Source: Paragordius varius (Eukaryota > Animalia > Nematomorpha). Taken from it: a DNA stretch of 64,000 nt. Every line of letters begins with the position of its first letter. Positions within the stretch are counted from its first letter, which is position 1. Under the pieces are notes generated by a model that did no database searches, was not told the DNA's origin, and saw only the letters and a program-made list of their open reading frames with translations. The stretch is from positions 1,364,001 to 1,428,000 of the forward strand of contig OZ176060.1 of assembly GCA_964247055.1 (NCBI GenBank). Reading direction: 5' to 3'. Shown here one piece after another: positions 26,057-64,000 of this stretch. The position numbers were made by a program, and so were the translations under genes.

Positions 26057-29000
26057 ATGATTGTTCTAAAAATGTTATATCTTATAATTTTTTGGGCAAT
26101 AAATGTTGTACGAGCATTAAGTTACAATAAATAATTATTATAGATATACAACCAAGATTTATATGCTTTGGAAAACAATGTAATATTTCAAAAGTGTTAT
26201 TTGACAATAAACCCGAAACCTATATACAAATTAACAATCGTTTCTCCAATTCCGATAAGCGTTTTGCAATTATAATGCCTTTGGAAAATTTATATTTTAT
26301 ATATAAAGTTGTTATTAATCAGCCATCGATTATAAAAGGTAATTTTTAACGAAATCTATTTTTTAGGTTTGGAGGAATATACTACTTCTGTTTTTGCTAG
26401 CAACTATTATACCCCTTTTTATTCCGAAATATGCGGGGAAAAATTAATAAACAATACAAATAAATTCGAAGTAATTTGTTCAAAAGTAACAAGTGGAATA
26501 TATCTATTTTTGTTTTGTGATAAAAATATATATATTAATGAAATGGAGATAATTGGTGATGTTTATCGAACAGCTAGTATGAATACCTATATTTTTAGTT
26601 AATATTGCAAAATCGAAACCGTCCGGTGTTAAATCTCGTTTTTCTTCAGAGATTTCCTATAAATTGGTGGATGGAATAAAAAGCCTAAAAGATATTAAAA
26701 ATCTTTGTGCTTTTTCTGAAAGCGATTCATCTCCTTGGATGTATGTAGATTTAGTCTCTGTTTATTATGTTGAAACTGTTTTTATATACAAACCCGTGGA
26801 GAAACAGGGTAATCTAAACATAACCTTTTTAATTTACTTAATAACTTTGTTGGAGCTATGCATATAATATTTTTACATTTAAAAATTTGGCATCACTATA
26901 TGGTATTTTGTAAAAAAGGAAGCTTAAAGATTTTCACTTTAATGTACATTTAGTAATTAACAAAAATATATTTAAAAACGCTTTAATCATTTAAAACAAG
27001 CGGCTCATCAGCGTATTACTATAATGAGAGATTATTTATGGTTAACAATATATAAATTTTATAATATGATTTTAAAAACGAAGGTATGGGAAATTTCCGT
27101 TTTTATGACTTAAAACAATAATCATATTAATATTTTTCTAATTTACCTTAATCCACTTTTATCCTTTTTAATTTGCTAAGTTCAGTTAGATAATCATAGT
27201 AAGTTTTTGTACAACCTGCAAAAATTTTATTAACTACTAAATAACTATATCTGTTGTTGATTAATTCAAATTTATTAAATTTATACTCTAAAAACATTAA
27301 GGTGTGTGTTGATTTACATTGGTATATCATTTGTTTTGAACAAAACCAAATATTCCTTATAGGGTATATATTTTTTTGGCTATAAAGAAATAGAATTATC
27401 TACAATATACCAACTACCTAGAACACTGTGTGGCCATGATCCAAATACATTGATGAATCATACATCATTCGATAGTTAAAATTTTCGGATAATGAATATC
27501 AAAATGTATATGCGATTAAGATATTAAAAAAATTCATTTGAATATGAGTCTAAATAATAAAACGCATTTTTAACCCACATTAAGTCGATCAAATACAATA
27601 GAAACACGTCAACTAAATTTTATTTGTTTAATACAGCATAAGGATGTTCTAAACGCAAAATTTCATGAGTAAAGATTTACATTTTTTCCGAATTAGAAAG
27701 ACTTACAAAACTATAAGGTAAACTTTGGTGTCAAATTTGGATCATAAAAACTTGTTAATATGCAGTAAAAGTTTATAATTTGTATTATGACAATCAAACT
27801 TTATCTATATACAGTGTTTACACAATATATCGCATTCAACAAAAATTTAAGCCCCATATAAAAAAAATTTTTTTCAATAATATCACCAAAGCGGGCTGCC
27901 AATTTTTTCAAAACCAATATATATATATATATATATATAATTGAGCCAATACGCATTATATATTGTGAAAATTATTTAAAATTAGGCTGAATAATTATCT
28001 TTTCCATACAATTCAACGCAGAAAAAAGATTTATCGAATTTATTCTAAATTTAGGGATTTTTGCCCTAAAGCTGCTACTAAAAGCCAAAATGGCGCTTAA
28101 AATATATAATCAAAAATTTCGGGTTAAGAATTCCTTAAATCAAAAATTTGAGATATAGATCTTTTTTTCAAGGAAAAAGTATTTAATTTTGTAAAAATTA
28201 TCCATAGCTTCGGCTTTGGTGCATCATCTAAAAATTTTCTTTTTTATATAAGGTTTAATTTTTTGAAGGAAATACATTAGATTATCTCTATATATAGAGT
28301 TAATATATGATGTTCTTAAAATTAAAAGCTATTACCTCATATTAACAAGTTTTTATGATTCAATTTTAACGCCAAATTAAGATTTACTTATAATCTTGAA
28401 ATCTTTGTGGGACTCTGGAAAAAATGTAAAGGTTTTGTTGATATTGCGTTTACATATGCTATATTAAAACAAATAAAATTTATTTGACACGTATTTATCT
28501 ATTACATTAATTTTCTTTGGCCTAATATGGGATAAAAATGCAATTTTTAATTTTTGTATATATCAAAAATATTTGAATAACATTTCTAGTATTTTAACCG
28601 CATATATCATTTCTATATTCATTATAAAGCTTTTAGCTATCGAATGATATATTATTCATTAACATTTATTTTTCGTTGCGCACCATGAAATAATAAAAAG
28701 TCTTATTTTTTATCACCAAAGCTTTGCTGCTATTCTCGCATTTTTAAAAAAGTTATAAATAAACAGCGTAAATATCAATTTTGTATGTGAGAGTTTATAT
28801 TTAATAAAACAAACAATTGGTCAGATGAAATAAAGCTTTTGCAAAAAAAAGAATATTATTATAGAACCGGCATGTAATGACCTTTATATTACGGAAAGTT
28901 AAGCCTAAATCTTATGCAAAACTAGAAAAGGAAATAGAAGATATTTATACAATCATAGTGATTGGTTTTATTAGCACCTGTTAGCATTTAATTCAAACAT

Positions 29001-32000
29001 ATCATTCTGTGGTTAATTTTTATCTTTTGTAATATTAATCTCTCTCGTTGTATATAATATGTTTGTTTAAATCATGCTTAGTTTGGAAGAAGAAAATTAC
29101 ATTTCCGATACTAGATCCTTTTTATATAGGTAATTTTATTATGCTTTTCTCAAACAAACTCTAATTTGTATTCTACTCTCCAAATTTTAACAACAAAAGG
29201 ACTCTCTCAAATTGTAAATATGAAGTAGTGTTGTATTTTGCAATCACGTTAGGACTTAATTTATCTGAAGCCCATCCGTTTTAATTGTTTTGGCATGGTC
29301 GGCGGATTTGTTGGGTTAAGAATAACGGCCAATAAGATATTTATGAATAAAAACTCTTTACAGCTAACAAAACCCTTACGTCCTCCAAATCTATTTATCC
29401 ATCAACTACTGAAAATGTGCGTTCTATAATCATTTAAAAAATTTTCTATCCACCTGTTTTTTATACAATTAAAAAGAACTTCTGCCAGCTGAAGAATCTA
29501 CATATTTCTACACTTTATAAGCTATTATCCATTTTGTGAAAAAGGCTGTGTTTTGTTAATACTATCGTTTCAATTATTGTAAGCATTCCCATCAGGCAAT
29601 AATTCTAACCTTTACTGTTTCATATTATGATGATGATTAAATCCTTACATGTTTGCTATTCAAAGATAGTTTATCACTTTCGTCCGAATCTTGGGCTACA
29701 CTTATTATTAACAAATAGAATCTTTATCAGGTACTTGACTTGCATCTTAAATCTGATAACTGGGGACGACAAAGCAAAATCAATGGTAAATTTATTATAT
29801 ATATCGTATTGTATACTATATATATATATATATATATCTAAGATAATTAGGTCTAATGTATTCACATATATCAAGGTAAGATGTTTGCTTTTATACAACT
29901 AACTCAAGGTATAATAATAATAGTCACAGGTGGTGGTGATGTTATAATAATAATATAATAATACTACACACATAATTTAAGAGGTTAATATAATAATATA
30001 TAACGAATGTTGTTTGTGCGGTTAATCTAATAGTGTAATAAAAGATTTATTCAAATTAGCCTGTCAGTTACTACTCTAACATCACTACCCCCTCCTAACG
30101 AAAGCGGGCAGGTTTCTGACGACTTCTTGTCGGGTACCGTCGTTCTTGTGTTTTAGCGAGGAACTGGTTGTCGCAGATTCCTGGGTATCATTATTTGGAC
30201 TTTCGGCTGTCGGAGTAATTGGTTCGATTTCGTCCCTTGCATTGATCGTGTTTGGTTGCGTTTCCGCGATTGTTCCATCATCCGTGGCAATGGTTACCTC
30301 CTCCTCATTTGTGTTGCTGGAAGTGGTCAGCTGTGGTTGTTGTACTATTTGGTCAGCGTGTTTCCTCACAACTTGTCTCGGTCCTTGTCCCACACCTTCT
30401 ATGAAAGCAGCCCTGTACGGTCCGTAATCTCTCCAGCGCGCTACCTTGGACCTAATTCATTTTTACTCATTACCTGGTCAGTAATGGCATCGGGGGGCCG
30501 GTGCATCTAGCAATTTCGCCCTACTGTTTAACCAGGTTAAGGGGGTATGGGGAGTACGCTTGAACATTAACTGGGCCGGGGTTTCTTTCGTTGTTGAGTG
30601 TATAGAATTTCTATACGCCCATAAGCTAATGTTAAACGCTTCGCGGGTGGATATCACATTATTTTTTATTCTTTTGTTGTTTTTTATTGTACCTACTAAC
30701 CTTTCTACCATCCCATTACTCTTAGGATGGTAAGGGGTAACCTTAATATGTTTCACCCCTAACGTACTTAAGGTTGACGTAAAATACTCATTACTGAAAT
30801 ACGAAACGTTATCGCTAACGATCTCTCTTGCAAAGCCAAACTTTGCAAAGGTTTCTTCTATTTTGTGGATAATATTCGCTGCGGTTACCTTTTTCAAAAT
30901 AAATTTTTCTGCCCATTTCGAGGCACTATCAATTATCAACAACCAATAAAAACCATCTACCGGTCCGGCGATATCAATATGCAAACGTTCCCATACAGCA
31001 ACATTATGATCTTACTGATACGTGGAATTCTGAGTAACATTCGGCCTACTACGTTGGCACGATTCGCAATGACTACTACTGGCTTTTACCAGGTCATTTT
31101 CTAATTTTGGCCAATAACACGTAAATCTGGCCATCGCTTTCATGGTCTCTACGTTGTTATGACCGCTGTTAGGTATCTCACCACCTCTTTTTGGAGGGGC
31201 TTCGGAATTACAATCCGATCATTTAAACTTTATAAACCATATAGATATGCCAACTCGTCCTTACGGTTTACAAACTTTTCTAATTCTGGAGAACTCCAGT
31301 CATGGTTGTTTAACGCTTTAATTACTTTTTGTAACACTGGATCTAATGCGGTTTCTTTTCGAATTTCATCTCTGCTTAACCGCACGTTATGACAATTCAA
31401 AAATCTCAAACATCTAACCGCATAATCTACATCATAGGCAACGATCTCGTCAATCGGCCATCTCGATAAATAATCAGCTCTATTTTGAGCCTCTTTTTGT
31501 GACTTATTTCAAAGTCGTATTCATTTATCATATTAATCCACCTTATTTTGATCTCTATTTATTAACAATACTAAAGGTAATTATAAATTTTCTACCATAT
31601 AGGAAACTATGAAACTTACGTAACGTAAATAATATTGCTTTTAATTCCTTTCAGCGTTGCTACATTTTTGTGAGGCATACGCTATCGGTATCCTTTCACT
31701 ATTAACTTCATGACTTAAAATACACCCGAAACCTATATCTGACGCATGAGTTTCTATTATCAATTTCCTATTCGGATTAGGGGTAATGATAACTGGGGAC
31801 GACAAAGTAAAGTCAATGGTAAATTTATTATATATATCGTATTGTATAATGATCTATCTATGTATATATATATATATATATATATAAGATAATTAGGCCT
31901 AATGTATTCACATATATCAAGGTGAGATGTTTGCTTTTATACAATTAACTCAAGGTATAATAATAATAGTCACACGTGGTTATAATAATATAATAATACT

Positions 32001-35000
32001 ACACAGATAATAGATTAATATAATAATATATAACGAATGTTGTTTGTGCGGTTAATCTAATCGTGTAACAAAACATTTATTAAAATTAGCCTGTCAGTTA
32101 CCACTCTAACAAACCAGATAACTTCTATAATATTCGCTTTTACAAAATTGCCAAACTATGAAATTTCGTTAGTTGATATTTTATATTTTCCAGTAACCAG
32201 GGGGGTTTGTCGTTTATAATATATTTTGTTTTCTGCCAGTACAATTAAGTTCTTTATTGGTTTAGAATTGATTTTATATTTTCCTTATGTAATACTTTTG
32301 AATAATCATGCATATTATGTAAGAGTCAGTAGGGGGGAAACTGCAACCTTATAGGTGCGTTCAAACCAATTGAGGGATTTTTTAAGCGTCCAAATGTACC
32401 ATTTACAATTCGAATTCCTCGAACAATTTAAGTTCAATTTTAAAATAAATTATGTGTTTCCTGGCTATTATAACTCATTATTAATCAATATATTTATAAA
32501 AATGAATGATGCTGGCTTTGTGATCTGTTGGAAAACCGGTAGACCCATTCCAATCCAAATATCGAAAAATTATAATCATTGATGAACCCGACAATAGCTT
32601 CGCCCTTTTTTTGAATTAGACCCCAGTTTGGGCTCACCCCATGTGAAAAACGGGTTTTTTGAAAACAGAAGTCCACAAAAATCGTTTCTTTGAAACAATT
32701 TTCTGGAGAACGTGTTGGACCATTCAATTTTAAATATGATTGTTTACTTATTTTTGATTGCGCCGAACATAGTCGGCTCGCTTTTTTGTTTTAGGCCCTA
32801 CCCGCTCCCCCCGTAAAATGCCATTTTTTTAAAAAACAAAGTCCACAAAAATAATTTTTTGAATCTATTTTTCGCCCAAGTAAACAATATATTAGTATGA
32901 ATGCACTGTTTTGACATTCCTATGAGATCATAGCTATTAAATAATGTTTGGAAATATTCACATATGTGGATCATTTTATTAACCCTTTTTTCAAATAGCC
33001 CCCCCCCCCCCTTCCCCCAGAAGTCCGAAAGACGTCCTCGGGCTGCGTAGCAGCACGAGATTTACGCTAATGTTTGGTAATTTTTTTAATCGTATGAACA
33101 AGTAGGAAATCTTAAGAAATTAATTTGATGATCAAGGCTTTAAACAATTTAAAACCTTATTTAATACAATGTCAATACTAAATTTAAATTACTGTAAATA
33201 TAACAATATTAATGAGCTATAGACCATTATCTCCATAATTGTCGTAAATTTATTTCGATTGCCTAACGAATTTGTTGTTTTATAAGAGATATTTGATATT
33301 TTGATAAATCCTTTTTTATAATATGGTGGTTATCTGCTAAGATATATATACCTAATAGGTATTATTATTGCGCATTTATAGGTTGTTTATCTGGCAATCC
33401 ATTATGTGAGCCCGGATCTTAATATTCTGACGAATTAAAACTTTTATAAAAAAATTTTGTATTGAAATTTTTCTGTAGCAGTATAAGCCTTGGCCATTAT
33501 TACTACTGTTGTTTGGAGGTTTAGCGTGTATTTCATCAATAAGTTTGGATGCAAAGCCATTTTGATTAAAATCTTTTGTTTTTAAATCGGAGCAATGTTC
33601 GGCATATGAGGGCTCAGATTGATTTTTAGCAGGATGGTAATGGAAAAAGCGCGTTGATACAAGTTTGTAATAATAGTTTACGGAAGATTGTAGGATCTCA
33701 TCAATCTAAAAATATTGACCAATTATTATATTCTATTGTTAATGTTGGAATCACACATATAATTTGAAAAACTAATAGTTTACGTAGTCATATGACAAAG
33801 ACTTTTAATGTATAAACGACGAACTATAAATCTTTTAAAACCTTCCATGGATTTATCTGCGAGAGTTTCATATCTTAATGTTTTTAATAGCAGGATAGAT
33901 TAGGTTTGTACTATTTTATATGATTATTTATGAATGCGGATCCGCTAAGTCTAAAAAGTTTGAAAGCAAGTAGATAAAAATTGTAAAAATTACCCCTAAA
34001 TCGGTTTTTATGCGAGTTTTACGACAAAAGATCATAGAGAAAAAGTCAAAAAGTTGATTAAGCAGTTAATAGTTAATTAAATGAGATAAATTAGGTAGCG
34101 AAAAGAAGGCGTTTTAAGAACTGGTGCAGTGTGTTTATAATCAAAGAGGAACATATATTAATTACAGCTGTTAAGAGGCAAGATTGTGGGTTAAAAAATG
34201 GAAATCCACAAGTTCATATATCATTTATTAGAATATAGCCGATTTTAATATTTGTTTGCATTCATTAATAAATTTTAGTTTTATTCTTTTGCAATAAATG
34301 GTAATTAACACTTAATTACAAATTATATTATGAATTTGTAAGATTAATACCGCTATATTTATGCGATAAATGATTGTGTATCAGATAATTAAAGTTGATG
34401 TAAATGATAAAATTATATAAATAAAATTTCCGCAAATTTTATATATCCTGCCTGCGTTGACCATGCCGGTTATACAAAACGTCTTGGGTAAGTCTGTTTA
34501 TTGTTGTTTATCGAATAAATTCTGATAAACTTATGTCTTTATGATACATCCTTTGAAAATATTTAAATCATTTCTTTATATTTTTAGAAAGTGGATATAA
34601 GGATGGGGTGGTGCGTGTCGGATTAATAAAACCGAAAAATGAATACAATGATAACTATAAAAATAAAATTTGTGGCTTTTGGTATGATGAACCAATTACT
34701 GATGCTGCCCTTATTATTGTGGAATGTAAAACAAAATATTCAAGTTAAACAAAATTTAATTTTAGGCAATGCCAGTTACGATAATTCCGATTTAGTTATA
34801 TTGAAGTCGGGATATGTATTTTATGATGTTAACATTCCCACTTTACGTATTTACATTATAAATATGTATTTAGATAAAGATTTTAAATGGAAATTACAAC
34901 CAATAATAGGTCAATTTGTAACATTGGAAATTAAAAATGATCATTATTTAAATGTTTTGAAGATATGTGAGATAGAAGTTTTTGGAAAAATATTTATTGG

Positions 35001-38000
35001 CAATGACAGTATATTAAGAATGAATTTTAGAATTGATAAATATTACCAAATCGGAAACAAGAGTGGATACTTTTTATCCACCTATTTTGGCGAACGATGA
35101 AATCTATTCAATAGAAAATTGTTTTTACGTAATATGTGCCAATCCCATTTGGATATGTCAATTTGAATTCATTTATTACATTGAATCAATGATGATTCTA
35201 AAGGGTGTTAGAGATTACAAATGTAAATTTTAGAAAAATACAGTAAAAATTGAAATTATTCGGACAATGTAAAAATATGCAAACAATTTTTCAAAAGACG
35301 ACCATACCTTAAATCCTAATAATTGCAAAATACATATTATTTTGTTAACATCTCTTTTTTATACTTTGCAAGTATGGTCTTAGAAAAAAATTGCCTTTTT
35401 GTGACGTTTTCTCCGTATAATTTCAATTCTTAATAGATAGAAACATTATAGATTTATTCAAGAGAGTTACTTCGCCTTTCGAAAATAAAATGTGCATTTA
35501 TGGCATTATAGGGGCATATTTTTTAATAATATTTTTAAATCATAAAATATTGATCCTATCTCTCCGTTAAATATTTTTATTTAATTATGGCTTGCATTAG
35601 TCGCATAAAAATACTAGGATTAGTAAATTATTTATTAAGTTAATATCTTAGGTTTAACAAATTAATAATATTATTAATTTTAAAATGATGTTTTGATTTT
35701 AATAATTTTTTATTCATTAACTCTAGATTGCAAAACTATACAACCGTTAGTTTTTAGCCCATAAGAATAACGTCAATTAATATTTTAAAAGCATCTTTAA
35801 TAGATATAAAGTCACCCTGATTATTATTAAAATGACTCCCTATGAATTTCATGTAGACTCTAAATCATTTTTATAAATATTATTTTCTAACTTGTTTCCT
35901 GTATTAATACTGTCTTTAAATGTCAATTTTATTTTATAAAATGACCAGGGCATTGTAAGCTCAGCCCAGTACAAAATGCAATTTTTTTTACATGAAATTT
36001 AGGGATCTGTTTTCCGATGAATCTTTTACTTATTAGCCTAATGAAAGTACCGAAGAAAAGTGTTAAAAAAACATTAAACACGGCTATATAGGATAGTGCA
36101 CACACACAATATTTTTAAATAGGTTTGGCTTTAAATTTTAAACATCTAAATAATTTGGCAGGACCTACGAGTCATCTAAAAAGTAAATTTCCAATTTCGT
36201 AGTTCCATATCTGAGGGTCGTAAAATTAGCGTTATTGAATAAAATGAAAATCTTAAATCAACATATCTCTATAAAATAGGCTAGTCTTAAAATAAACGAA
36301 AAAATGCCAAACGCGATAATTTTGTTAATAGTATCAACAAAATTTTAATCTTAAAAATTAGAAATCTGTAACATGTTAATGCGTATTTTAAGGTGTTTGA
36401 AGATACATAAAATTTAATAACATAATAACATTAATCGCTGATACTATTACCACCTTTATTGCTTTTTCGCTTCATATATTTAAAAATATTAATCAGGTGT
36501 ATTTTTTGTGTAAAAAACAGAAATGATACAGGATCAAATTAACAAAGAACCTTTACTTAAAAAATATACTGTAGGTAAAACAGTTTATGTTCAATATAGC
36601 CAATTATTATTTAAGATTTGAATAGTAGAACAAGGATATTTATTTGTAATATTATTATTACAGTAGCGTATGTAAGATTGTTAGTGCAAAATAGAATAAA
36701 AAACATTTTTTTAAAAAAAACATGGGGATATTATAAATAGTTAGTCATACACTAACATACATCTCTATTTTATCGTATTATACTCTATTGTTAACTATAG
36801 GCTTCTGTTATTTACCTAATTAGTACCATGAAATGAAAATTCCAAATTTTTTATCAGAAATCTGGGATTTTATGTCTCACTATTATTTTTTCATTTTTCT
36901 ATCGCAATTTAAAAAACCAAATGCGCACATTTTACATATACCAAGATTGTCACGTAATTTTGTATACACTCTCATACAGTAGCGTATGCAGTAAAAGATT
37001 GTTAGTGCAAAATAATCTTAATGAACACAAAACAGGGGGACAATTTTCATATATGAATTATCATTTAGTCCTATTTATAAACATATCCATAATATCCCCC
37101 TGTTTTGTGTTCATTAAAATTATTTTGCACTAATCTTTTACTCCATACGCTACTGTAATATCTTTTTATTCTATTTTGCACAACAATCTCTTACTCCATA
37201 CGCTACTGTATATTATTTTTTATTTAATAAAAATACATTTGAGTATTGAGCCACCATTTAAATATATTTTTAAATTTTATTTTGAATTATACAAGAACCA
37301 TTTATTTTAATTTGAATCAATTTGTTTAATATTATCACTATTTTAAATGAAAAAATATAATCCATATTATAGGGAACTATGTTACAGTATTGGTGGGCTT
37401 TAATAATAATGGTTTAAATAATGTTTGCACAAAGATTTTCGATTCCACGAAAGGCGAATCGATTTTCATAAAATGTGAGTATATTTCAAAAGGAAACTAT
37501 GTAGCACTATCTAAGGAAACAACGCAGAATTCAGAAGAAACATTAGAGCTCTGTGAAATTAAAATATTTGGTATACTGGACCAAAAATATAAAGGTAAAT
37601 ATTATATGTAAATATAGAAAATATTGCGTTCAATAATAAGCTTAAAGTTTCAACGTCTACACCTGCAAAAGATTTACCGGATTATTTGGATACAATACCA
37701 AAAGAAAATTTAGCAGTAGATGGATTCTACCGTGATTACCTCCTTTCCCCAAATTTTATTCCAAAATGCTATCAGTTTCAGGATGTATCGGTTACATGGA
37801 TGCTTGAACTAAATCTTTATTTGAAAATTTCAATGATCGTTATTAATGGTGTTGTTGATATAGGTTTGATTTTTTTTAAAGTAAGGATCCAAAATAATTA
37901 CATACTCGTTAAAGTATGGACCAACCAAAGAATCACTGCAAATTTATAACATATTCACGACTATAAGTATAAGTGATATTCCTATTGAAGTAATTTTTTT

Positions 38001-39163: not shown

Positions 39164-39487
39164 TCTACATATTTATAAAAATGGAAAATGCTGGCTTTGT
39201 AATCTGGTATCGGAAAACCGGTAGACCCATTCAAATCCAAACATCGAAAATATATAATCATTAATGAATGCCCCGACAATAGCTTCTCCCTTTTTTTGAA
39301 ATAGGCCCCCAGTTCGGGCCCACCTCGTGTAAACGGTTTTTTTGAAAATAGAAGTTCACAAAAATCGTGTCTTTGAGACAATTTTCTGGAGAACGTGTTG
39401 GATCATCCAATTTCAAATATGATTTTTGTTTCTTATTTTCGATTGCGTCGAACATATTCGAGTCACTTTTTTAATTTAGGTCCTCTT
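39164..39487 (+). mobile_element. Non-autonomous Helitron copy 4 (3'-truncated)
   Basis: A|TCTACATATTTATAAAAATGGAAAATGCTGG start, colinear with other copies. Confidence 0.8.
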
Positions 39488-49600: not shown

Positions 49601-52600
49601 AACGTACGTTCATTAACAGAAACCAAACAGGTAATAATTGAAAAGGAAATGGAAAGATTGAACTTAGATCAACTGGGTCTAACGGAAACCAGGCAAAAAG
49701 GTAGCGCGAAAGCACAAAACAAAAATTATACATTGTTAAGATCGGGGAGAGATGACCAGAAATCAGAAGGCTTGCAGTATTAATAAAAAACAAATTAAAT
49801 AAAAGTCTCATTAGTTATACACCATATACACCCAGAATCAGGAGTATTAGACTGAAAGCTAAGCCACTTAAATTTCCATACATAGTAGTTAATGCTCTTA
49901 CGTCAAATGCTCCCAAAGAAGACATAGAGGATTTTGATGCAAAGTTGCAAATAGTTTTGGATGAAACGAAGAAAGGAGATATGATTATCATAGGAGGTGA
50001 TTGGAACAGCAAAGTTGGTAGAGGTAGAGTAGATCAAATAGTTTGGTCATATGGATTGGGAGAACGAAACGAGGCTGGGGAGGCACTTATCAATTTTTGC
50101 CAGGAAAAATGTCATGCGATCGAATTCTCTTGAGAAAAACACAATTTTGGGATGGTAGAAGGACAAAGGAAACGAGGCCGACCACCGATGAGGTGGTTGG
50201 ATAAGATAAAAGAGGAGACTAAAATGATATTGAGCGATCTCAATCTTGCGGTAAAAGATAAAAGAAAGTGGAAAGAAATAGTCAAAACTATATCCAAAAA
50301 GTCGTTTACGACTTAAGAATAACCAACTAAATATGCATTTTCTAATAGACATCAAAATTTAGCATATATCTTATTTTTTATCGCGGAATCTCAGCATTTT
50401 TCGTTATTTAAATTTTATTCACCTAAAATTGAAATTATTTGTGTTGATTAATAAAAGAAAGATAATTGAATAAGCTCATGTTTATATCTAAAATTATTTT
50501 AACAAATTACCAAGGATGTGCACATTTGTAACTGGCATTATGAAACCGTTTATGATATGCTATTTAATTTTCAGGCATTGGATGATTTTTTATCTTACAT
50601 TTAATAATGATGAGAAATAATTATCAAAAAACAAATAGAATTAGCTATTAACCACCATATATAAGCTTACAAAAAAAATTGTTAGGTTGATTAACTTGTT
50701 TAATGCAAATTTATTCTATTTTTTAATTGGCTTTAATTACGGACAAAACTATCCTCGTTTTACTGAATACTCGCTTCAAATATTAATTTCGGTTACAGAA
50801 TAATGCATTTTTTAAATTTTTATACTCTTTCGTGGCCGGTCATTCATGTATTAAATGACTAAAAGAGTAGTTAATTTACATGTCATTCAGCATATCTGAA
50901 TTTTTTCGTTTTTATACTTATATATTAATAGTATAAATAAAAAATACAGATTAATTATCTGGGATAGGAAACTAAGTTTTATGGTACTATGATGTAAATT
51001 TATGTTTTTTAAAAACTATATCATAAATAAAAATTTTTTTACACCATATTAATATATTATTACATATGAGTTTAAATTACAATATACAGGAGTTTTGTAA
51101 CACAAACAACATAAGGTAAAATTAAGCATTTATATCTAACATTTTTGCATAATTAGCCATGGAGTAACTTTTTTATGCGTGGCCTATTGACACATTTAAA
51201 TTTACCACATATATATTGGTAACTTTTTTCAATTACCAAATAGTTTTATCCTTTGCTTAAATTTAAAAAATGTAACGCACATAATTCTTGATAACAATAT
51301 CATTGTTTAATAACTAATTTTTGTTGCGATACAATATGAATAATTCTGGCCAATCTTTATAAAAAAATTATATAATACTACCTATTTTTTTTAAAAAAAT
51401 TAAATTAAGTTTGAACAAAGTATTTATCAAATAAAAAATTATAACATTATATTTCATTGCGAACTAAATCAGGCGCTGTATTTTTTTCTTTTAAATTGGG
51501 AAAAAAAATAAAATTAAGGATAATTAAAAAAACGATATGAAACTTGAGATATTATAATTTATATATCAGATATATACAATACATATAATTAGGTTTTTTT
51601 TAAATCTCATATAAAATAATCGTGTATTTCATAATTCACAATTAAAATATTATGAAATTTAAAATAATATTAATAATTACTCTTAGCTAAATCTCAACTT
51701 TATTTTATTTATTAAAAAAACTTATATATCAAAATAAATTATTGATCTATCGCTTGTTATTTTTTTATTTTTTGACATCTGGTTTATGAGTGTATTTACT
51801 GTTTTATTTTAGATATGAGCGGGAATTTGAGAGTATATAAATTAATACAAAATAGGCGTTCATGTAATGGAATATACCAATCAGTATAAATTCCAGTAAA
51901 ACTTTGTTTTAAAACAAATGGGATTTTTCCGGGTTAATGGTTGATATTTACTACTGTAAAACATATTTTGTATTATATATACACTGAAAAATCCTCTCAG
52001 GTAAGATTCCAAAATACAACAGTAAATTAATTATACACTCACAAACCAGATGTCAAAAAAATTAATATATAAAAACAAAATATTATAAATTTTATTTTAC
52101 ATATGAGTTATTTTTACTGTATATTAGTGGGTTTAGCTAGTAAATAATTAAAAAAATTATTTTAATATAGTTCATAATATTATAATTTATAATTTAAGAA
52201 AAATTTTTGTTAATTTTTGGTATAATATATATATATATATATATATTCATATATAGACAAAATCAAAATCTACGGAAAATCAGATAACTCTAAAAATACA
52301 CAAGATTCAATATTGATTTATGATAACAATTATATCATGATACCCAATTGGTGTTTTTTGATGAAAACCTTGGAATGGTGGAAAATACAGTTGTCCTCAA
52401 CCTACATATTTGATTTTCTTAAAATATACAAAAGTTTAATTTTATAAATATAATATATAGCATCTAAAGCTCCGATTGACGTTTCAATTGGATTAGCATC
52501 GGGTTTACATTACCCTTGTAAAACCAAAAACTTTTCATTAATATCCATTTGGACTTGTGAAAGCATGGAACAACAAAATCGTACATCTTTATTAATTTTT

Positions 52601-54919
52601 TAGTTGGAAAATTTGGATCCCCCATTGGGGATATAATTTATATTCAAAATAACAACAAAAACGAAAAAATATATATATGTGAGATTGAAATATTTGCAGA
52701 CTTAAAAAACAAACAAAGTTTTTATTTATACTATAATAAAGATTTAATAATCCCTATTAAAAACAATATAAATATAAACCATATAATGCGGTGTAAAAGT
52801 CAGGATTCTAAAAGTAATATGGACTTTAAATTGGATTCGTTATATTTAATTAACGAAATTCATATCCTTTTATCAGACTTCGGTATAATAAATTTAGATT
52901 TGTTTAGAACCTAGTAAAATACTAACAAAAGTCGGGTATGTTGAGACAAAACTATTTGCTATTTGTTGGGTAATTGATGTTTTAAGTCCTTTACTCGAAA
53001 AACAGTGTAACGAGGAAAATATTGGCAACATAATCAGGTTTTATTACGTATAATGCTTAGTTTGATAATACAAACACCAAACGTCATTTTAAAAATATGT
53101 GGAATCAACATTTTTGGAAGGAGAACGAATTTTCAAAGTTACTTTTTGTTAATACTATTATTATATACTTTGTATATATCTATTTTAAAATATTCGTTTG
53201 TAAGAAAAGCCGATCTGTTTTTTTCATAATAAGATTAATAGAATTAGGGTTAAAAATTGTCAAAGGCAGCACTGATGGCTTTAGCAACTAATAAATTGAT
53301 TAAAAAAATAAATATTACCAATCAGCATTAACCGGATAAGAAGGGATGGATAAATAATGGGAATAACAAATTCAAGTTTACAATTTACAAAAGTAGTATC
53401 ATCTATATATTTATAAAAATGGAAAATGCTGGCTTTGTGATCTGTTTCCGGAAAACCGGTGGACCCATTCAAATCCAAACATCGAAAAAAAATAATAATT
53501 AATAAACGCCTCGACAAAAGCTTAGCCCTTTTTTTTGAAATAGGCCCCTAGTTCGGGCCCACCCTGAGTAAACGCATTTTTGTTGAGAAGTCCATAAAAA
53601 TCGTGTCTTTGAGACAATTTTCCGGAGAACGTGTTGGACCATTCAATTATGATTTTTGTTTACTTAATTTCGATTGCGCCGAACATAGTCTCGTTTTTTA
53701 TTTTAGGCCCTCTTTTTACCTGCTCCCCCCGTAAAATGCCATTTTTTTCAAAAAACAAAGTCCACAAAAATAATTTTTTAGATCTATTTTTGGCCCTAGG
53801 TATGAAACCGTAAAAATTTAATTGGTTCCACGTATTTCCTGATAAAAGTCAAAAATTTTAGTCATCTTTTATATGATAGCTGCTGAGTAAAAAGCTACCC
53901 GCGAAAAATTGACCCGTCATATCAAAATCGCGTGCTTCTGGGGCTAAATTTCAGAAAATCTATAAGGCCATATGAGTTTAATAGTTGCTTAAAGAATTAC
54001 CCGTAAAAAGTCAAAAATTTTAGTCGAGCGGATTTTTAGAGTTAGCCGTTAAATAAGTTTTGCTATTCTTCCATAAACTATTAGGAATGAATGATTCCAG
54101 GTAAATGGCAAATTTTTTTATCTAACTACATTTTTATATTGGTCTCTGGGTAGGGGGCTGGCCTTTGGAGCCAAATTTTAGAAAACTTATGAGATTATGT
54201 GAACTAGTGCCGCATAACAAAATTGCTCATAAAATCAAAAATCCCCCCAGAAGTCCGGAGGACTTCCTCGAACTGCGTAGCAGCACGAGATTTACGCTAG
54301 TAATCGTATAAATTAAGTTTTAAAATAGGATATATAATTTTTATTCTTGCGATAACGATTATTATATATATATATATATAATATATCCCCTCAGCATACA
54401 GCTTCATATATTACATCATAAGAGCCTCAGCTGTATCATATGTTGAAATCTTAATTTGAAAAAATATGTTTAATATTCGATATTTTCAATCAATAGGCAT
54501 CCTTGTTGAAAAGTTATTATATCTAACTAACAATTTGAGAGTTATATAAACTGTAAATTATAAGCCAATAAAACCAATTCAAAATTGTTTAAGCGGTAAT
54601 ACCCATTTATATATTATTATTTTTGTGCTTTACGTATTATCATCTCAGTGGCGCATCATTTGTAGCGTCTGACGCACAATTATGGCGCTCCCTCCTTTTT
54701 TTAAAAAATACAAACGTCTCGTACAGTCATATACATTTAGAATCTATCATATATAACTAAATTTATTCACATTCAATTGCAAACATTTAGATATTCTAAT
54801 AAAGTCGTTAATAAGGAATTTATAAAAACACATTAATTTTCGGTTCTTATATTGCTATTGTTCTTATAATACGAACAAAGCAATAACTCTGCATCCAAAA
54901 ACAAATGTATGAAAAATAG

Positions 54920-54953
<34 letters not shown>

Positions 54954-57900
54954 TGAGTGCAAAAAAAGTTTTGACAGAATATTATTTTTCATGATATTGC
55001 TAATGACGAGGGTATTCATTTGTCGTAAATTTTTTTATTTGTTTACGACCTAGTTTGTAAAATGTTCAGCGAATCAAAATGGGCAAAAAGTGAAAATTAG
55101 GATAATTTAAAATAATAATTATAATAGTTAAGATATTATGGTTGATTATCATTTTAGGAGATATTTTCGCTATATAAATAGCCTAAAATTATATAGATAG
55201 GGTTGTATATCATATCAATTTAAAAGATGGCATTTTTCTTTTAACAGACTTAAAAAACAAAAATTTTTTTTGAAACTAAATTAAAATAAATTTTTTTAAA
55301 TATTTATTTGTTAAACTCACTATTAAAATCTTAACCATCATATTATATGTAAAAGAAACATATATTAAAATAATACTAAAAAAATATTGTTTTTTTTCAT
55401 TTTTTGTCATCTGGTTTATGAGTATATAATAAACTTCTGTTTTATTTTAAATATTACATGATAAATTATAATTAATGATAGGATTTACAAGTGAAAAATC
55501 AACCAAAACTCCGAACATATTCAGTAAATATATTTATTTGTCTTATAACAAACTTGTTAAGGGATTCGTAAAGATTGATGGTTTCTACTACTTTCAAATC
55601 CTATTTTGCATTATATATATTATAATTCCCATTCATGTAAGATTTCAAAATAAAACAAATTTTTAATTGACACATAAACCAGGACAAAAAGTAAATAATT
55701 AAAAAAAAAATATTTTAATATAGTTTCATAAAAATATTTTTGTCTTAGAGTATGCTATATGAAAAACGCCAGCTTTGGAAGTGAGATATTAAACATACCC
55801 TAACTATATGATTTTAGGCTATGCTTAAATTGAAAATCCTAACATAATATCTTATGATTTATTATTATTTTTTGAATTATCTTCAATTATAATTTCACTG
55901 TTTACCCAATTGATTTTCTCTCATAATTCAAATATGTCGTCAACAATTAAATAGCGGCAAATGAATTCGCCTGTCATAAGCTATCTCATGGGAAAATTTT
56001 TTTTCTAAAATTAACCCTCTTTTTTGCACACAATGTTAACACTCTTAATATTTTAATTTTTATAAAAATATTTTAAAGTCATAATAGGTTATTATACAAG
56101 GTTAGAACTTATTAATATTATATAAAAAACAGGTTAATATAATCAACCAAGTTCTGGATCAAGTTATCGACATTTCTAATCGACATTTCTATGATAAGTT
56201 GAATTGTAACAAATATATTAAATGATTGTTCTCTTAACAGAATAAATCAAAATTATTATCCCTTATATAAAAAAGAGCACATGGTGGTTAACTAGTCCTT
56301 TTACATATTTTTTGACAAATCATTAAATTTTCCTTTACCTCAGAAGGGGAAGGCTAAATACGGCTTCTTATGTTTTTTTGTATATATAATCTCCCGCTCT
56401 GTAATTGTAAACATTTAAAACAAAGAGTTTTATTGAGACAGCTTCATAATAAAATTATGTCTGAAAAATTATAAAAAAATGAATTATATAAAATATTCAA
56501 ATAATTTATAATCCATCATTTTATATATTTAATTTTGAATAGATACAAACATTGCCCCATATGCCGAAGTTGGTATGAGCTCCTACCAAAGTTCAGCTAA
56601 ACGAGCTATTGATAATTCTTTTTATTGTTCTTCTACAAAAAGAGAATATTTTCCTTTTTATGAATTAAGATGGACATCATTTTATCAAATCGACGGAGTA
56701 GCCATATCCTTAACAAATAAATATAATTTGTTTGGATTAAATCTAATAGTTGGGCTTTACAAAGAAATAAATGATGCTAAAATTTGTTTTAAATATGGTC
56801 ACAACGATACATTCGACACAAATTTCGAAAAATATATAATTATTAACTGTGCACAACTTGTGATTGGGAAATATTTAACAATTTATTTAAACACATATGA
56901 AATCGGTTGTTATACATATTAATTATAGGATACTCTATATTAAAAATCTGTAGTTTACATGTATTTGGAAAACAAAGTCTTGCGACATTTGGTATCATAT
57001 ATATAAATATATATATATATATAAATAATATGTTAAATTTTGGGTCTATTTTGTACTTTTGAAAACAAACTTTTGGGGTAAATAACGGTCTTTTAAGCAA
57101 AAAAACAAGGAAAACAAAAGCTAAATGCAAAATTAAACATAAATGATCTTAATCTTTGACGAGTTTTTTTAAATAGGGTATAACAAAACATAAATATATT
57201 AATAATTAATACTATATAACTTATTAAATTTTGATTGGCATTTTAACGAAATCATAAGCTTTTTGTATACTATTAAATTTCAAGTCCACTACACTTAGCC
57301 TGTTTACTAAAACGTACAATCCACCCCCAATCATTTTGATTTAGGTCATATTAAGTATATAATAAAAAAACCCTAACTCCTAAAAATGGGCTTGTTGGTT
57401 TTGGAGCACTTAAACTTTCATAATTGTCGCATACTGATAAATGAAAATATGACTGGTTCATTTAATATTCATTTCTGATATAAAATCGATTTAAAGATTT
57501 ATATTTTTAATACCTGAGAAAAGGGCACTGTTGATAGTAATATTTTTGTTTTATACGTTGATTTCTTAAAACAATATAATGTAAAGAAATTAATCATTGA
57601 ATTGAGTATAAATTATAGGAAGATTTGTTTAGTTGTCCAAATTTAAGAAAAATGGTTATTATGATTCAAAACACGCAAAATTGACCATATTATTTAAATC
57701 TGAACCTTCTCGAAAAAATCATTTAAAAATTTAAAGTTAATTTATTAGCTGATATTTTAAAGATTATATATTTTATGTCTTCCAAATATAATAAATCCAT
57801 AACAATTGTTAACCTTTTGTGTATGTTAACTTAAAATCAACATTTATTTTTTTTATTCAAAATAAATTTCTGCAAATACCATTTTTCAGTAAAATCAAAA

Positions 57901-60900
57901 TTTTTTCAACAAACGCAACATTTTTGCAATTCAACGCGACATTGTCGTTATTTGAAAAAATTTGCGCTTGGTTGAAAAAGTGTTTCTTTTGACAAATGGC
58001 ATAACTCAAAATACATTAAAACTAATTTAAATCATTATAACTGAATTTTTTATGTATTTGTTTTTTTGAAAAATAAATTCTTTTTATCAGAATCTCCCAA
58101 AATTATCAAAATCGAAACTTCATCCGGTAATTGGGACCAATCAATTGTTTCGAGCTCAATAGATTATAATTTGCCGACAAAGTATATGATGACCAAAATG
58201 CGATTATACCCATATATTCGAATAACTTTGGAAACGGATCATATTATTTGGGGATTATATATTGCTAAGAAGCGTGATGAAAGTATCTGTTAAAGTATAA
58301 ATAGTATTTCCTAAATCAATACTTACAATTGGTTATAATGTGTCATTTGAATATAACACTTTATGCAATATTATTCCTACACACATGATGGAGAATTCTA
58401 TATATATAGAGTGTATGAAGGACTCTTCCACACAAAGTAAGAATTTTAATTGTAAATGTTAGCTTTTATTGATGGAACTCAGATTTCATATGTCGGATGT
58501 TACATTTTTAATATAAACGAAAATTTAACAGAAATTCATATAAATGATAAATTAGCTTTTAACGATCAAGATTGCATTATTTCGTGCTTTAAACGTAAAT
58601 ATAAATTTTCGGCAGTGAAGCTATCACAATGTTTTTGTGCCAACGATATTGGAAAATATGGGGAGTCTGAAAATTTATGTAATGAGCCATGTACTGGTAA
58701 TATAGGGCATGGATGTGGTGGAAAACAAGCTTATAAAGCTTATTTTACTGGTATTTGATTATATTTAAAGCGAAAAATATTTTAACATAGGTCTTTAATA
58801 GTAAAAATAATAATTTATTTTCATCATCGATCCTGTTCTCATATGATTGCGTATAAAGATAGCCATTTTATATGAGGCATTTATTGGTTTTAAACCAATC
58901 GTGATATGTCTTTGACAGCTTTTGCGATTGAGATTGTCAATCCAACAATCTGTTCATGTTGCCCCAGAATCTGGTTTATTCTGAGGAAGCAGGATATATC
59001 GGTGTATTTTTTAAATTTTATTGTTTGTGTTTTGCTAAAATAATTGTCGTTATGATTAGTAGAGGAGTTTTGGATTTTTTTCATTTCGCATAATTTATTT
59101 TCGTTGATTTGATTGTCAATATTTGCTAACAACTGTTAGAAGGTCGCAATCAATCGCATAGATTCTTTTGTTAGCTTAAAATGTTTTTTTGTTATTTGGA
59201 TGTCGGAATGTTGCACATGCATATGTGTTCTTGTTATGCATTTGGTAAGCTTGCTGTTTAGTGATCAAATATTATATGTCTAAAATCTGGGGGTTATAAA
59301 ACTACTGAAATATATATATTTTGATAGGAAAATGTATCAGGATTATCTAAAAAAGTAATTCCCACTTTTCTGGGTGCATATAAGAAAATGCCAAAATTTG
59401 TGCATATTTTTTTAAATAAGTTTTTTAAATAGAAACCAGAGGCTTCATTCCAAATTATCACCATAATATATAATAAACTACATATAAAAAATTATAAAAT
59501 GTTTTTTTTACTAATTTTGATTTTCAGTTGTGCGGTTTACCTTATAATATTTAATTAAAACCATTTTTACATGTGTTAATGGATGGAGCCAGTTCCCCAT
59601 AAGATGGATTTATAATTCAGTTAAACTCTTTAATATATTATCATACTTCAATAATCATTTTTTAAAATTTATATTACATTTTTTAATTATATGAATACAG
59701 TTTGTGTAATAATATGTAATTTATATATTTTCTTTAAAAGTTTTAAACAGCCAAAACATCAAATTTTGAAACTAAGTTTTAAAAAGTTTTCCATTTATTC
59801 GCTACCAACTTTTTTTGACAAAAGAATGAGTTATTTCTTAAACTACTAATGTATGAAAATAGAAAGTTTATAAATGTCTATTTTATTTTCATTAATTTAT
59901 ACCTGAATACTTGTATACCAACGACAGATCATGTAATGATAAAATTTTTAAAAAATATTTAAAATATTTTAAAAATTTTGATTCTATATAAGGACACGGA
60001 ATATAAAACATAGCGTAGGTATTTATTTATGGGATTTTGAAAAATAAACCTCAAAAATTGTGTTTTTGTTAGACAATTGTTTCCAGGCATATTAAATTCA
60101 ATATAAATTTTAAATACGTTGAACATGAACTTGTTCGAGCCCATTAGCCGCAATAGCTGATAACATTGTTTTGAAAAGTTCTATACAAAAAAAACGAAGC
60201 AATAAAAACAGACTATATAAATAAAAAGTAGTTTTAGATATTCACAATAAAAGCAAACATTTTCCAACGCTTTTTGTCATTTTGGCGCTAGTTAGGGCTA
60301 CATATCTGTTAAATTAGCAAACGAATGATATCTTTAAGAATTTCAGTGATGGTTTTAGGTTTTCGTTAAAGGAATGTAATTCATTTGCTTTTTACAATTG
60401 GCCGCTCAATACATCAATCTCTGTAAAATACGCGACCTAATAAATATAACTTGGCTTTAGAAAACCTATTATACCGATTAAATAGTGATACCGGGTCACC
60501 ATAAAAAGAGCGATAGGGTCCAACATATTATAATTATTGAATAATAATCTATATATTTATAAAAATGGAAAATGCTGGCTTTGTGATCTGTTTCCAACCG
60601 GTAAACCCATTCGAATCTAAATATCAAAAAATATAATCATAATGAATGCCCCGCCAATAACTTCGCCCTTTTTTGATAAAGGCCCCCAGTTCGGGCCCAC
60701 TCCGTGTGAAAATGGGTTTTTTTCAAAACAATCCACAAAAATTGTGTCTTTGAGACAATTTTCCGGAGAACGTGTTGTACCATTCAATTTTAAATATGAT
60801 TTTTGTTTAGTTATTTCGATTCGCTATTTTAATTTAGGCCCTCTTTTTACCCGCTCCCCCCGTAAAATGCCATTTTTTTCAAAAAACAAAGTCCACAACA

Positions 60901-63900
60901 ATGATTTTTTAAATCTATATTTCGCTCAAGTAAACAATATATTATTATGAATGCACAATTTTGAAATTCCTATGAGATCATAGCTATCAAATAATGTTTC
61001 AAATAATTAACATATCTGGATTATTTTATTGTCCCTTTTTTTAAATAGCCGCCCAGAAGTTCGTAGGACTTCCTCGGGCTGCGTAGCTGCACGAGAACTA
61101 CGCTAGTAAATTATATTTATTGAATAAAATTATTAGCAAAAAAAGAAAATATTACCATCTTTTTTAAATTTTGACACATATATTATTTTAAATTTTATTA
61201 ATTAAATGTGTTTTTTAATGTTTTTAAAACCAGTGGCGCGCAATATTCTTTGTGGTTTTTTATATTTAAATAAATCAGCTATCAGTTATGTTAAAAACTT
61301 GGATAATAATTTCATCAAAAAGAAGATTTTCAAAATATTAGAACTTTTGTCCATAAACATATTCAAAATTATATGAAACTGGAATCTACAGATAAAAAAT
61401 TTTTGGTATTTAAAGTAAAAACGGTTTAAATTTTAAATCTATAGTGAGTAATTTGATAATGGAAATTATTTTCGATGCAAAAATCAATTTTTAAACGTTA
61501 TTGTCATGTTAAAGATATATGCATACGAAAAAAAAGTAATTCTTAAAATATAATGCGAAAGCAATAAATAATTTTAATAGTGTTGAGTCTACCAGGTGAA
61601 CGGATTCTAACCGTGCTTAAAAAAACTAGTCAAACACTTTAAAATATATATTTATCACTGATTAAAATTTATTAAAATAATAAATATACCTTTTTGATAA
61701 GCGTTCGGATCGTTTAAAAATAATTCAACAATCCAAATCATATCTTAATATTTATATGCATCATTGTTGTTTATATAGGTTATAGAGAAGAATGGTTTTT
61801 CTATGGCAGTGTTCCGGGAAAATACATGCAGATTATAGCAACAATTGATGTACCTGTATATTACTCTCTTTGCCAATTGACTATTATTGGACGACCCTTA
61901 AATTATACAGGCGAAAATATGGCATTTGGCAAAGTCGGCTTTGAGAAAAATAGAAACTATTATTCAGAAAATTATAATGGGCAGAATTTATATCGAAATC
62001 CCTCATGCAGAAGTTTTCTCGAATTATATTTATATAGAATTGACCTATATCCAAAATCCATGGTTCACTCTGGATTTAAATGCGATTGCTGAAATCTCTG
62101 GTGTTTATGTAGATGTGAAAAATCAATATAATTCATGGATTTTTTCAGACTATTTACATGTATTTGTGGGATATTCGGAGGATTATAATCAAAATTTTTT
62201 ATGCACTAAAAGCCAGTATAAAAAAATCATATATTAAGATCCCAGTTATTTTTTAGCCAATGTCCTTTTTTAAAAGGCCAATATGTGACAATCGTATTAA
62301 TGAGTTACCAAGGATCTGAAACTTTTTTTATCTGTTATTTTAATGTTTATGGGACGATCAAATATAATTATCAAAGTTGTCAAGTTTATAATGTATTAGA
62401 CAATATTGCTTATAAAAAATTAGCTTATACCAGATTAAATTATGCGCATCATATAACTGATGGTATTTTAAATAACTGTTTGGGCACATATTCATCTAAT
62501 ACATATATTATTGATTTAAATTATCCTCATCTAATATATGCAGCAAATTTAATTTTTAAGAACAGTATTATATTCTCTTACTTTAGAACAAAGTAGTGTA
62601 GTGCATATTAGTGTGTCGATGGGTTGGTATACTCTGTCTGCGGCAAATATAATTTGTAATTTATTTACATCCAATCAACAATTATATAAAAACTGTACAA
62701 AAGTTATTACTGGGAAATTTGTTACTATGGAATCCAAAACACAAGAAGAATTTTTGTTATGTGAAGCCGAAGTATATGGCAGAGAAATTGCAAGTGCGTA
62801 CTTTCTATAATTAAGATGATATTTCAAGAGATATAGGGGATGCATCTCAGTCATACCGTAGCATTTCTGATCCAAATGTGGCTTTAGACGGAAACTATGG
62901 CTACATCTATTCACTTTCATGGCTAACATGCACCTTCGTACCTTCAATTATTAAAGACCCATGGTGGATGGTTCATTTACGCTCTATTTATGTCATATCG
63001 GGGATAGAAATATACCGAAAATTGGATAATTGTGATAATGGTAGATCAAACATTAACACTTATAGATAAAAAAGTATACAATTTTCAAATTCGAGTTGGG
63101 TTCGACAAGGATTATTTAATGAATGATATATGCGCCGAATATAAAGGATATATGTATCAAACAAATAATACCATTGTGTTGAATTGTGTAAGCTCTAGTA
63201 TAGGTTTTATCTTTTGTTATTTCAGATATTTTACACAATGATTATTCAATGTATGGCGATACCGTTTCTATCAATATCATAACTGATGCCAAAGACATAA
63301 ATGCAAATTTAATTATTTGTGAGTTAGTGATAACGGGATTAGATATTGGATTTATGGAAAGTTATTACCTTAATAATTTTAGCATCTATCAAAAATATTG
63401 GATGTTTTAACGAAATACAAACTAATTCTCTCTATGATCCAAAATATAATTTAAGTTTATCCAAAGAAGATGATATATTAACAAACATCTTGGCTTTCAA
63501 AGTTGATTGCAACCGAAAATGCCGTACTCTTGGATTAGATTTTTCGGCAATATATGGTTAAATAATGTTTAAAAAATTTAGGCGGAATAAAATGTTTTTG
63601 CGTTAATGAATTAAATAATAAATTTTTAAAAATAAATGATAGGGAGTGTGATCTATGTGAAGAACATTATTTTTGTGGTTTAAATTCCATATTCATATCT
63701 GCAACTCAATTAAGTACATTTAAAACTAATTATTAGTTAATGTCGGTTATAATAAATGGGTGGAAACAGATTCTAAAGCTTTTGAAACAGCCTTAACCGA
63801 TGGGATCACTGATGTTTTTGCAACATACAGCTGTATTACCATAAAAAAATGGTCAAAATTAGAACTAGATTCCGTTTATTCCATTGTTGGCATGTATATA

Positions 63901-64000
63901 TTAACCACAATAAGTTATCTGTATTATAACACATAATAGATCAATCATTTGATTTAGAAATATTTTATGGATATGATCATTATGATATGAGAAAAAACAA
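46690..64000 (+). CDS. Gene B (3'-incomplete): secreted-type mosaic protein with >=8 complete F-type-lectin/discoidin-like domains and 2 WSC domains. Exon clusters 46690-47447, 52257-53137, 56543-56991, 58091-58750, 61779-64000
   Basis: In-frame chain of GT-AG introns, mostly 22-28 nt and phase 1. Domain-end motifs LCEFEIYG, LCEVFAYG, ICEIEIFA, ICGINIFG, ICSLHVFG, LCQLTIIG, ICYFNVYG, LCEAEVYG, ICELVITG; canonical ALDGN...DPWWMVHL at ~62880-62980. First exon is tentative. Confidence 0.78.
48724..49251 (+). mobile_element. Non-autonomous Helitron copy 5 (hairpin region deleted)
   Basis: A|TC start, ends ACGCTAG|T. Confidence 0.8.
49496..50320 (+). mobile_element. Internally deleted RTE (BovB-like) LINE: APE endonuclease joined to the 3' tail
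   Basis: KVGCWNVRSL...LGLTETR...IIGGDWNSKVG...YGLGERNEAGEALINFC, then EGQRKRGRPPMRWLDKIKE; upstream GGGAAGGCAATGGCAAACC motif. Confidence 0.88.
53402..54300 (+). mobile_element. Non-autonomous Helitron copy 6 (longest, 899 bp)
   Basis: A|TC start, 3' hairpin, CTAG|T end; extra ~350-bp internal segment. Confidence 0.88.
58463..58750 (+). CDS. WSC-domain exon of gene B (288 nt, phase 1-1)
   Basis: YVGCY...CIISCFKRKYKFSAVKLSQCFC...CNEPCTGNIGHGCGG: complete WSC cysteine pattern. Confidence 0.88.
60548..61106 (+). mobile_element. Non-autonomous Helitron copy 7
   Basis: A|TC start, 3' hairpin variant, CTAG|T end. Confidence 0.88.
63383..63720 (+). CDS. Second WSC-like domain of gene B (two exons split by a 25-nt intron)
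   Basis: NIGCF...DCNRKCRTLGLDFSAIY|GGIKCFC...ECDLCEEHYFCG. Confidence 0.7.

Follow-up and report, generated by a model that had tools for sequence, protein, structure and literature searches.

Tandem F-type lectin arrays and a horsehair-worm locus of similar design

Tandem arrays are common among F-type lectins (PMC5712786). Among predicted proteins, that of the amphioxus Branchiostoma belcheri (XP_019622324.1, 2414 amino acids) has 12 F-type lectin domains at its N-terminus and an EGF array after them, and that of the acorn worm Glandiceps talaboti (XP_077989192.1, 862 amino acids) pairs one WSC domain with five tandem F-type lectin domains. Arrays of about 12 or more such domains also occur in the molluscs Nucella lapillus (KAL8585202.1) and Gigantopelta aegis (XP_041360601.1) and in a fucolectin of the frog Xenopus tropicalis (LOC100491211). 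Here we describe a locus of a horsehair worm (Nematomorpha) in which an array of very divergent F-type-lectin-like domains is interspersed with one WSC domain and a probable second and is followed, downstream, by EGF exons. It occupies much of a stretch of 64,000 nucleotides (the window; C11:1364001-1428000 in an assembly of 110.6 Mb and 44 contigs, about 25% G+C); we also read 90 kb of downstream DNA, for which the window numbering is carried past 64000 (extended coordinates).

We put at roughly 0.6 the probability that a single, very large gene, rich in introns, has its 5' third in the window. If this is correct, all the exons, including those on either side of the interval 37881-46818 and those of the EGF array, would be spliced into one mRNA, and the product would be secreted, its jelly-roll modules and two WSC modules forming a multivalent head on a long EGF rod that is calcium-binding in part. 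Guessing from the architecture, its most likely role would be in extracellular matrix, in the cuticle or in cell-surface adhesion, through many weak contacts.

The design of a lectin head on a stalk is shared with the amphioxus protein, which is about 30% identical to the window exons and differs in its canonical lectin domains (713 bits to PF22633), in lacking WSC and in an EGF portion that is much shorter. In the acorn-worm protein, the WSC is N-terminal instead of lying inside a lectin domain, the lectin domains are canonical and there is no EGF stalk. Likewise, the Nucella, Gigantopelta and Xenopus arrays differ in consisting of canonical lectin domains only, with no WSC or EGF found in them. 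Combinations of lectin with EGF and of WSC with lectin have thus been predicted already, and the horsehair-worm locus would be a further mosaic of known parts. What it would add is a single and apparently ancient internal array of modules with the F-type lectin fold, all of them lacking the classical sugar-binding residues. Our literature searches retrieved no paper combining 'F-type lectin' and 'WSC', and nothing relevant on horsehair-worm lectins. The value of the locus lies mainly in the annotation of this genome, since we provide a gene model that automatic annotation would probably fragment, and in a candidate for a surface molecule of a parasite that has been little studied.

Exon-by-exon reading of the array

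Thirty-nine in-frame pieces were fixed by reading the three forward frames around the matches to a motif of the C-terminal strand of the domains ([LI]CE.E[IV][FY]G-like). This motif occurs eight times in lectin exons on the plus strand, between 26.5 and 63.3 kb; the same regular-expression search yielded no match on the minus strand and one further chance match inside a transposon. A script then listed all the GT...AG pairs compatible with the frames and the stop codons on both sides.

The reading gave 12 complete F-type-lectin-like domains plus a partial one in the window, each domain being split over two to three exons (Table 1). N-terminal halves follow the layout NIA...S...(A)xDG...C...PWW-type strand...Y.I..V.I., and C-terminal halves, in one or two exons, follow V.VG...N..C....I.C...G.YV.I....L.LCE.E.YG. 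Exons amount to 5.8 kb in 37.9 kb (about 15%), and the 36 exon pieces, 2118 codons in total, contain no stop, against a background in which 7.2% of the codons in any frame are stops.

A compatible GT-AG intron is present between all adjacent pairs of pieces. From these we infer 34 introns, 33 of them within the window; of the 34, 29 are in phase 1, three in phase 0 and two in phase 2. Most are micro-introns (27 of the 34, with 26 in the window) of 22-41 nucleotides, generally 22-28; the other seven are long introns of 1.1-8.9 kb, which hold transposon debris. The excess of phase 1 is real, because the phases are set by the flanking open frames and not by the choice of splice sites. As far as the reading goes, the locus shows a phase-1 modular layout preserved in a genome with micro-introns.

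These results agree in several respects with a first-pass annotation, made by eye from the DNA of the window, that had split the array into two tandem genes, 'gene A' and 'gene B'. Its count of about four domains in the former and at least eight complete ones in the latter was borne out, as were the start at 26057, where we found an ATG with a signal-peptide-like leader, the assignment of almost all exon borders to phase 1 (28 of the 33 window introns) and the running of the array off the window, beyond which domain 13 is completed and domain 14 and an EGF array follow.

The modules as homologues of the F-type lectin domain

All searches were made with single exons or with alignments of single exons. 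The N-halves (14 sequences, alignment A2) and C-halves (13 sequences, alignment A3) were aligned and profiled separately. Against solved structures, the A2 profile retrieved F-type lectins only: striped bass FBP32 (3cqo) was first, with E 4e-7 and both its domains matched, followed by the eel agglutinin AAA (1k12, E 7e-3) and the pneumococcal fucose-binding modules 2j22/2j1r. The A3 profile also matched 3cqo first (E 1.5e-3), at the corresponding C-terminal positions, and no discoidin chain among the solved structures was matched by either profile. In a HMMER search of 1.84 billion representative proteins, A2 had 407 matches at E <= 1e-3, the best being arrays of PF22633/PF00754 domains.

Structural residues are kept across the copies, namely the NIA start, the DG, the PWW-type strand, the VG, the cysteines and the LCE.E.YG end. 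By profile and by predicted fold the modules belong to the same family as AAA and FBP32, with the same order of landmarks; they differ in that all copies lack the fucose motif and that their single exons fall below the Pfam cut-off. Indeed, when Pfam was run on 28 single exons, the best two lectin exons, the N-halves of domains 2 and 12, reached 19.8 and 18.2 bits against a cut-off of 27.8; that of domain 12 matched F5_F8_type_C_2 (E 3.8e-3) and, likewise short of the cut-off, F5_F8_type_C (E 5.5e-3). Pfam was silent on the other lectin exons of this set because the domains are split and very divergent. Domain 12 has an A2 match of 77 bits and is 30-40% identical to vertebrate fucolectin-like proteins. 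Over single exons, identity to proteins of the 1.84-billion-protein library does not exceed about 30-40%, and a word search with the 121-residue exon of domain 8 gave no candidate.

This domain 8 exon (56542-56904) is the sole near-complete domain in a single exon, so that the result on the fold covers one of the 14 domains. Its language-model features placed it nearest to the F5_F8_type_C clusters of a protein atlas (0.94). When AlphaFold2 was given an alignment (A4) that included canonical family members, the model of the exon had a predicted local distance difference test (pLDDT) of 77 and a predicted template modelling (TM) score of 0.70. In Foldseek the model retrieved 1k12 at the top (E 8e-5, TM score 0.74) and also 3cqo (TM score 0.77), with factor VIII C2, neuropilin b1 and CBM32 in lower ranks. 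The discoidin-like beta-sandwich that the first-pass annotation had expected was therefore obtained, in a model that leans on its alignment. Two points speak against giving this model much weight: it is not independent of the sequence result, as A4 held ordinary F-type lectins, and the prediction from the single sequence of the exon was poor (pLDDT 43). Taking profiles and model together, the modules are homologues of the F-type lectin domain.

Factor VIII C2, neuropilin b1 and bacterial CBM32 share the same jelly-roll superfold, and discoidin/CBM32 was considered as the family of the modules and rejected, as the solved F-type lectins come first both by sequence and by fold. The only other Pfam match of this clan in the genome is an ordinary FA58C discoidin domain on the minus strand at C6:5481893 (within C6:5479001-5485000). 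It is followed by laminin-G-like exons, looks like a Caspr/neurexin-IV-type gene and is unrelated to the array, whose profile A2 does not match it.

The copies are also far apart from each other, as the first-pass annotation had noted, with a median pairwise identity of about 19% (range 7-31%). The same annotation went on to propose a rapidly evolving, lineage-specific family, for which we found no paralogs: over the whole 110-Mb genome, A2 finds exactly the 14 N-half exons of the locus and nothing else. On this evidence the locus is one gene with old internal repeats and not a dispersed family, and the copies are best described as old and divergent, which is distinct from rapid evolution.

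Absence of the classical fucose-binding residues

The fucose-binding motif of the F-type lectins is HX24RXDX4(R/K), and some oyster bindin domains likewise lack the basic triad (PMC5712786). The motif had no match in any plus-strand open frame between 26 and 68 kb. In the 14 copies, the residue two positions after the conserved cysteine is F, V, L, S, Q, G, T or Y, and never H; domain 12 alone retains an R..D.C stretch, with a spacing that differs from that of the motif. The His/Arg/Arg triad is thus gone from all 14 modules; classical fucose binding is probably absent from them, and it is doubtful that they are lectins in the functional sense. They may act as binding or spacer units for other glycans or surfaces, and the WSC is likely to be the better candidate for a carbohydrate binder within the product.

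A nested WSC domain and a probable second module

The first-pass annotation had proposed two WSC domains, of which the first is well supported by Pfam. This exon (58465-58749) matches PF01822 with E 5.6e-11 and 43 bits, against a cut-off of 27.8, over model positions 1-82 of 82, and WSC is the sole family to pass the Pfam threshold among the 28 single exons. It lies within domain 9, between its middle and its last strands, with the final exon of the domain about 3 kb later, at 61781. By its Pfam match it is a bona fide WSC domain, and by its position it is nested and not in tandem with the lectin-like domains.

The second (63346-63733) had no Pfam match at E <= 1 on either of its exons, searched singly, and was recognised by its pattern of eight cysteines, which, read by eye, are in WSC order across the two exons. 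BLASTP against the first WSC gave weak but collinear matches (E 0.49 and 0.032), and a second WSC module is probable. Elsewhere in the genome WSC matches are limited to one locus, C1:4995179-4996006 on the plus strand, with two to three WSC-like stretches partly within a 955-residue open frame.

Probable joining of 'gene A' and 'gene B'

The division into two genes falls at two incomplete pieces of a lectin-like domain. An N-half without its C-half (37617-37880) closes at GTAAGG, the best donor of the locus, in phase 0. The next recognisable piece (46819-46938) is C-terminal; it opens right after a stop codon and a T-rich acceptor, has no ATG, can be entered only in phase 0 and is linked to domain 5 via a 23-nucleotide phase-1 intron. 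Taken together, the two pieces have the length of one normal domain. Large multicopy repeats occupy much of the DNA that separates them (37.9-46.8 kb), there is no lectin-profile match on the plus strand, and Pfam on ten plus-strand open frames gave nothing above noise (E >= 0.065). Because the orphan halves are complementary, the phase-0 donor 37881 and acceptor 46818 fit each other and no recognisable exon lies in between, we consider it probable that 'gene A' and 'gene B' are a single gene with an 8.9-kb intron.

Some observations weigh against this junction or against the gene model as a whole. The interval 37881-46818 would be the sole long intron in phase 0, and agreement of phase at its two ends has a one-in-three chance on its own. 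Repeats are not demonstrated for some 3.6 kb of it (42.7-46.3 kb), where a leader exon might hide. The local profiles, which when run on all the window open frames matched plus-strand pieces only, are weak on divergent pieces and on those outside their alignments; for instance, the real exon at 34557-34745 scored E 9. Finally, every junction is deduced from the DNA, and several have near-equal alternative sites.

The best of the competing explanations, which we nonetheless hold to be unlikely, retains the two tandem genes. Gene A would extend from 26057 to about 38 kb and end with a truncated fourth domain, since the frame, were donor 37881 not used, meets an in-frame stop at 37947 after 22 more codons; the first exon of gene B would lie somewhere within 38-46.8 kb, where the stretch without demonstrated repeats leaves room for a short leader exon, and the odd phase of the linking intron would be accounted for. 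Gene A would then finish in a domain without its last strands, and the first recognisable exon of gene B, which follows a stop and an acceptor and lacks an ATG, would encode last strands only. Neither the profiles nor Pfam give any signal on the plus strand between the two, and the orphan pieces together make up a whole domain of normal length.

Probable continuation into an EGF array

Under the single-gene reading, the array continues past the end of the window. The remainder of domain 13 is at 63942-64130, domain 14 follows at 67046-67482 (extended coordinates), and the two are linked by phase-1 junctions. Further on, the same strand carries cysteine-rich exons at 73157-123588 (extended coordinates), in an array that reaches C11:1487588. 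Single downstream exons gave EGF-type matches above the cut-offs (FXa_inhibition 57 bits, cEGF 54.8 bits and EGF_CA 53 bits). The gene probably continues for another 60 kb or so into this EGF array via two predicted phase-1 junctions. Its end is a difficulty for this model: there is a TAG at C11:1487586, directly after the last calcium-binding EGF exon, which overlaps a possible phase-1 donor, GTTAGT. Since this site may be read as a stop or as a donor, both a secreted and a membrane-anchored product are possible.

Alternatively, there might be two neighbouring genes, one for the lectin/WSC head (26-67.5 kb) and one for the EGF array (73-124 kb), a division that we rate as slightly less likely still than that at 37881. 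The link between them would be a 5.7-kb intron, placed by inference, that contains a reverse-transcriptase fragment on the same strand. The head and the array are, however, on the same strand; domain 14 is followed by a phase-1 donor, and an acceptor in the same phase stands right where the first EGF open frame begins. This frame starts just past a stop codon and lacks a nearby ATG of its own, and a lectin array joined to an EGF array is the architecture predicted in amphioxus.

Biological role and the taxon

The first-pass annotation had suggested, if the DNA was myxozoan, a role in polar capsules. Some 14 kb upstream of the window lies the first exon of RPS5 (C11:1349995-1350366, minus strand), which shares 95% identity with proteins of Gordionus sp. 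m RMFG-2023 and no more than 80% with any other named match. The genome is therefore that of a horsehair worm (Nematomorpha), probably of another species than this Gordionus, and not of a myxozoan, and the polar-capsule role falls with this.

A bolder version of the single-gene reading, to which we give a low probability, is that of a giant, nematomorph-specific surface or matrix protein in which the 14 modules have turned to a new ligand, the WSC has been grafted into a loop, and the whole is used at the interface with the host. If true, the roles to be considered would be larval attachment, a cyst or cuticle coat, or masking from insect immunity.

Least probable of all is a decaying, non-functional relic of a lectin array, which would fit the disappearance of the fucose motif from all the copies, their drift to about 19% identity, the transposon debris that fills the long introns and the lack of a close relative in the 1.84-billion-protein library, but hardly the openness of all 36 exon pieces (2118 codons) at the local frequency of stops, the GT-AG ends and compatible phase kept at every junction, the structural residues preserved across copies or the confinement of the transposons to the introns.

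Coordinates of the locus, intron content and repeats

Table 1. Exons, domains and selected introns of the array within the window
Feature	Position	Strand	Remarks
Exon 1	26057..26120	+	ATG and signal-peptide-like leader (n-region, hydrophobic core, small residues); phase-1 donor; read from sequence
Intron after exon 1	26121-26143	+	23 nucleotides, GT-AG
Lectin-like domain 1	26144..26576	+	Two exons, 28-nucleotide intron 26339-26366; N-half matches A2, C-half is a row of A3
Domain 2, N-half exon	26599..26808	+	A2 match 70 bits; Pfam F5_F8_type_C_2 E 1.2e-3, below cut-off
Phase-1 intron within domain 2	26809..34587	+	7.8 kb; fragment of a long terminal repeat (LTR) retrotransposon on the minus strand
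Domain 2, C-half	34588..35008	+	Two exons, 22-nucleotide intron 34744-34765; C-terminal motif at 34963
Domain 3, N-half exon	35031..35222	+	A2 match
Domain 3, C-half exon	37373..37594	+	After 2.15-kb phase-1 intron; row of A3; motif at 37549
Domain 4, N-half exon	37618..37880	+	A2 match 58.6 bits; phase-0 GTAAGG donor; end of 'gene A' of the first-pass annotation
Proposed phase-0 intron joining 'gene A' and 'gene B'	37881..46818	+	8.9 kb; largely multicopy repeats
Domain 4, C-terminal exon	46819..46939	+	Last strands only; C-half profile E 9e-4 over its last third
Domain 5	46963..47447	+	Three exons, introns of 23 and 24 nucleotides; A2 match
Domains 6 and 7	52257..53137	+	Six exons, after a 4.8-kb intron with an APE-like retroelement fragment
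Domain 8	56543..56991	+	121-residue exon (56542-56904 in frame) is a near-whole domain; last strand in second exon
Domain 9, N-half and middle	58091..58436	+	Two exons
WSC domain 1	58463..58750	+	One exon, phase-1 borders, inside domain 9; Pfam PF01822
Domain 9, last strands	61779..61880	+	After 3.0-kb intron
Domains 10 and 11	61881..62793	+	Introns 61934-61967 (phase 0), 62216-62256 (phase 2), 62565-62586 (phase 1)
Domain 12	62816..63360	+	Three exons; copy least diverged from ordinary F-type lectins
WSC-like module 2	63383..63713	+	Two exons, 25-nucleotide intron 63557-63581; eight cysteines in WSC order
Domain 13, N-half and start of C-half	63737..64000	+	Crosses window end

The debris in the long introns includes a fragment of the integrase (rve) of an LTR element at 30481-31011 on the minus strand (E 4e-7), within debris at 30088-31936 (minus strand), and a fragment of an APE-like endonuclease at 49756-50130 on the plus strand (E 1e-4), within debris at 49556-50355 (plus strand). 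Downstream of the window there is an RVT_1 reverse transcriptase (L002:7119-7529, plus strand, E 4e-13), on the gene's own strand. A tandem-repeat scan for intron arrays at exon edges found none at the locus.

Two stretches inside exons, 47357-47380 (24 nucleotides) and 34832-34858 (27 nucleotides), are in frame and have GT-AG ends. Either splicing or retention would be neutral for the frame, so that they are possible optional micro-introns.

A multicopy repeat at 41412-42740 (and 38810-41375) has at least 40 copies in the genome, at 79-93% identity and often as inverted pairs; a 117-bp tandem array at 41598-42200 is part of it. An interspersed repeat of about 300 bp, with an open-reading-frame-like stretch (pseudo-ORF) 'NGPT.SPENC...', is found in both orientations at 14480, 32497, 39148, 48717, 53284 and 60620, scattered across the long introns.

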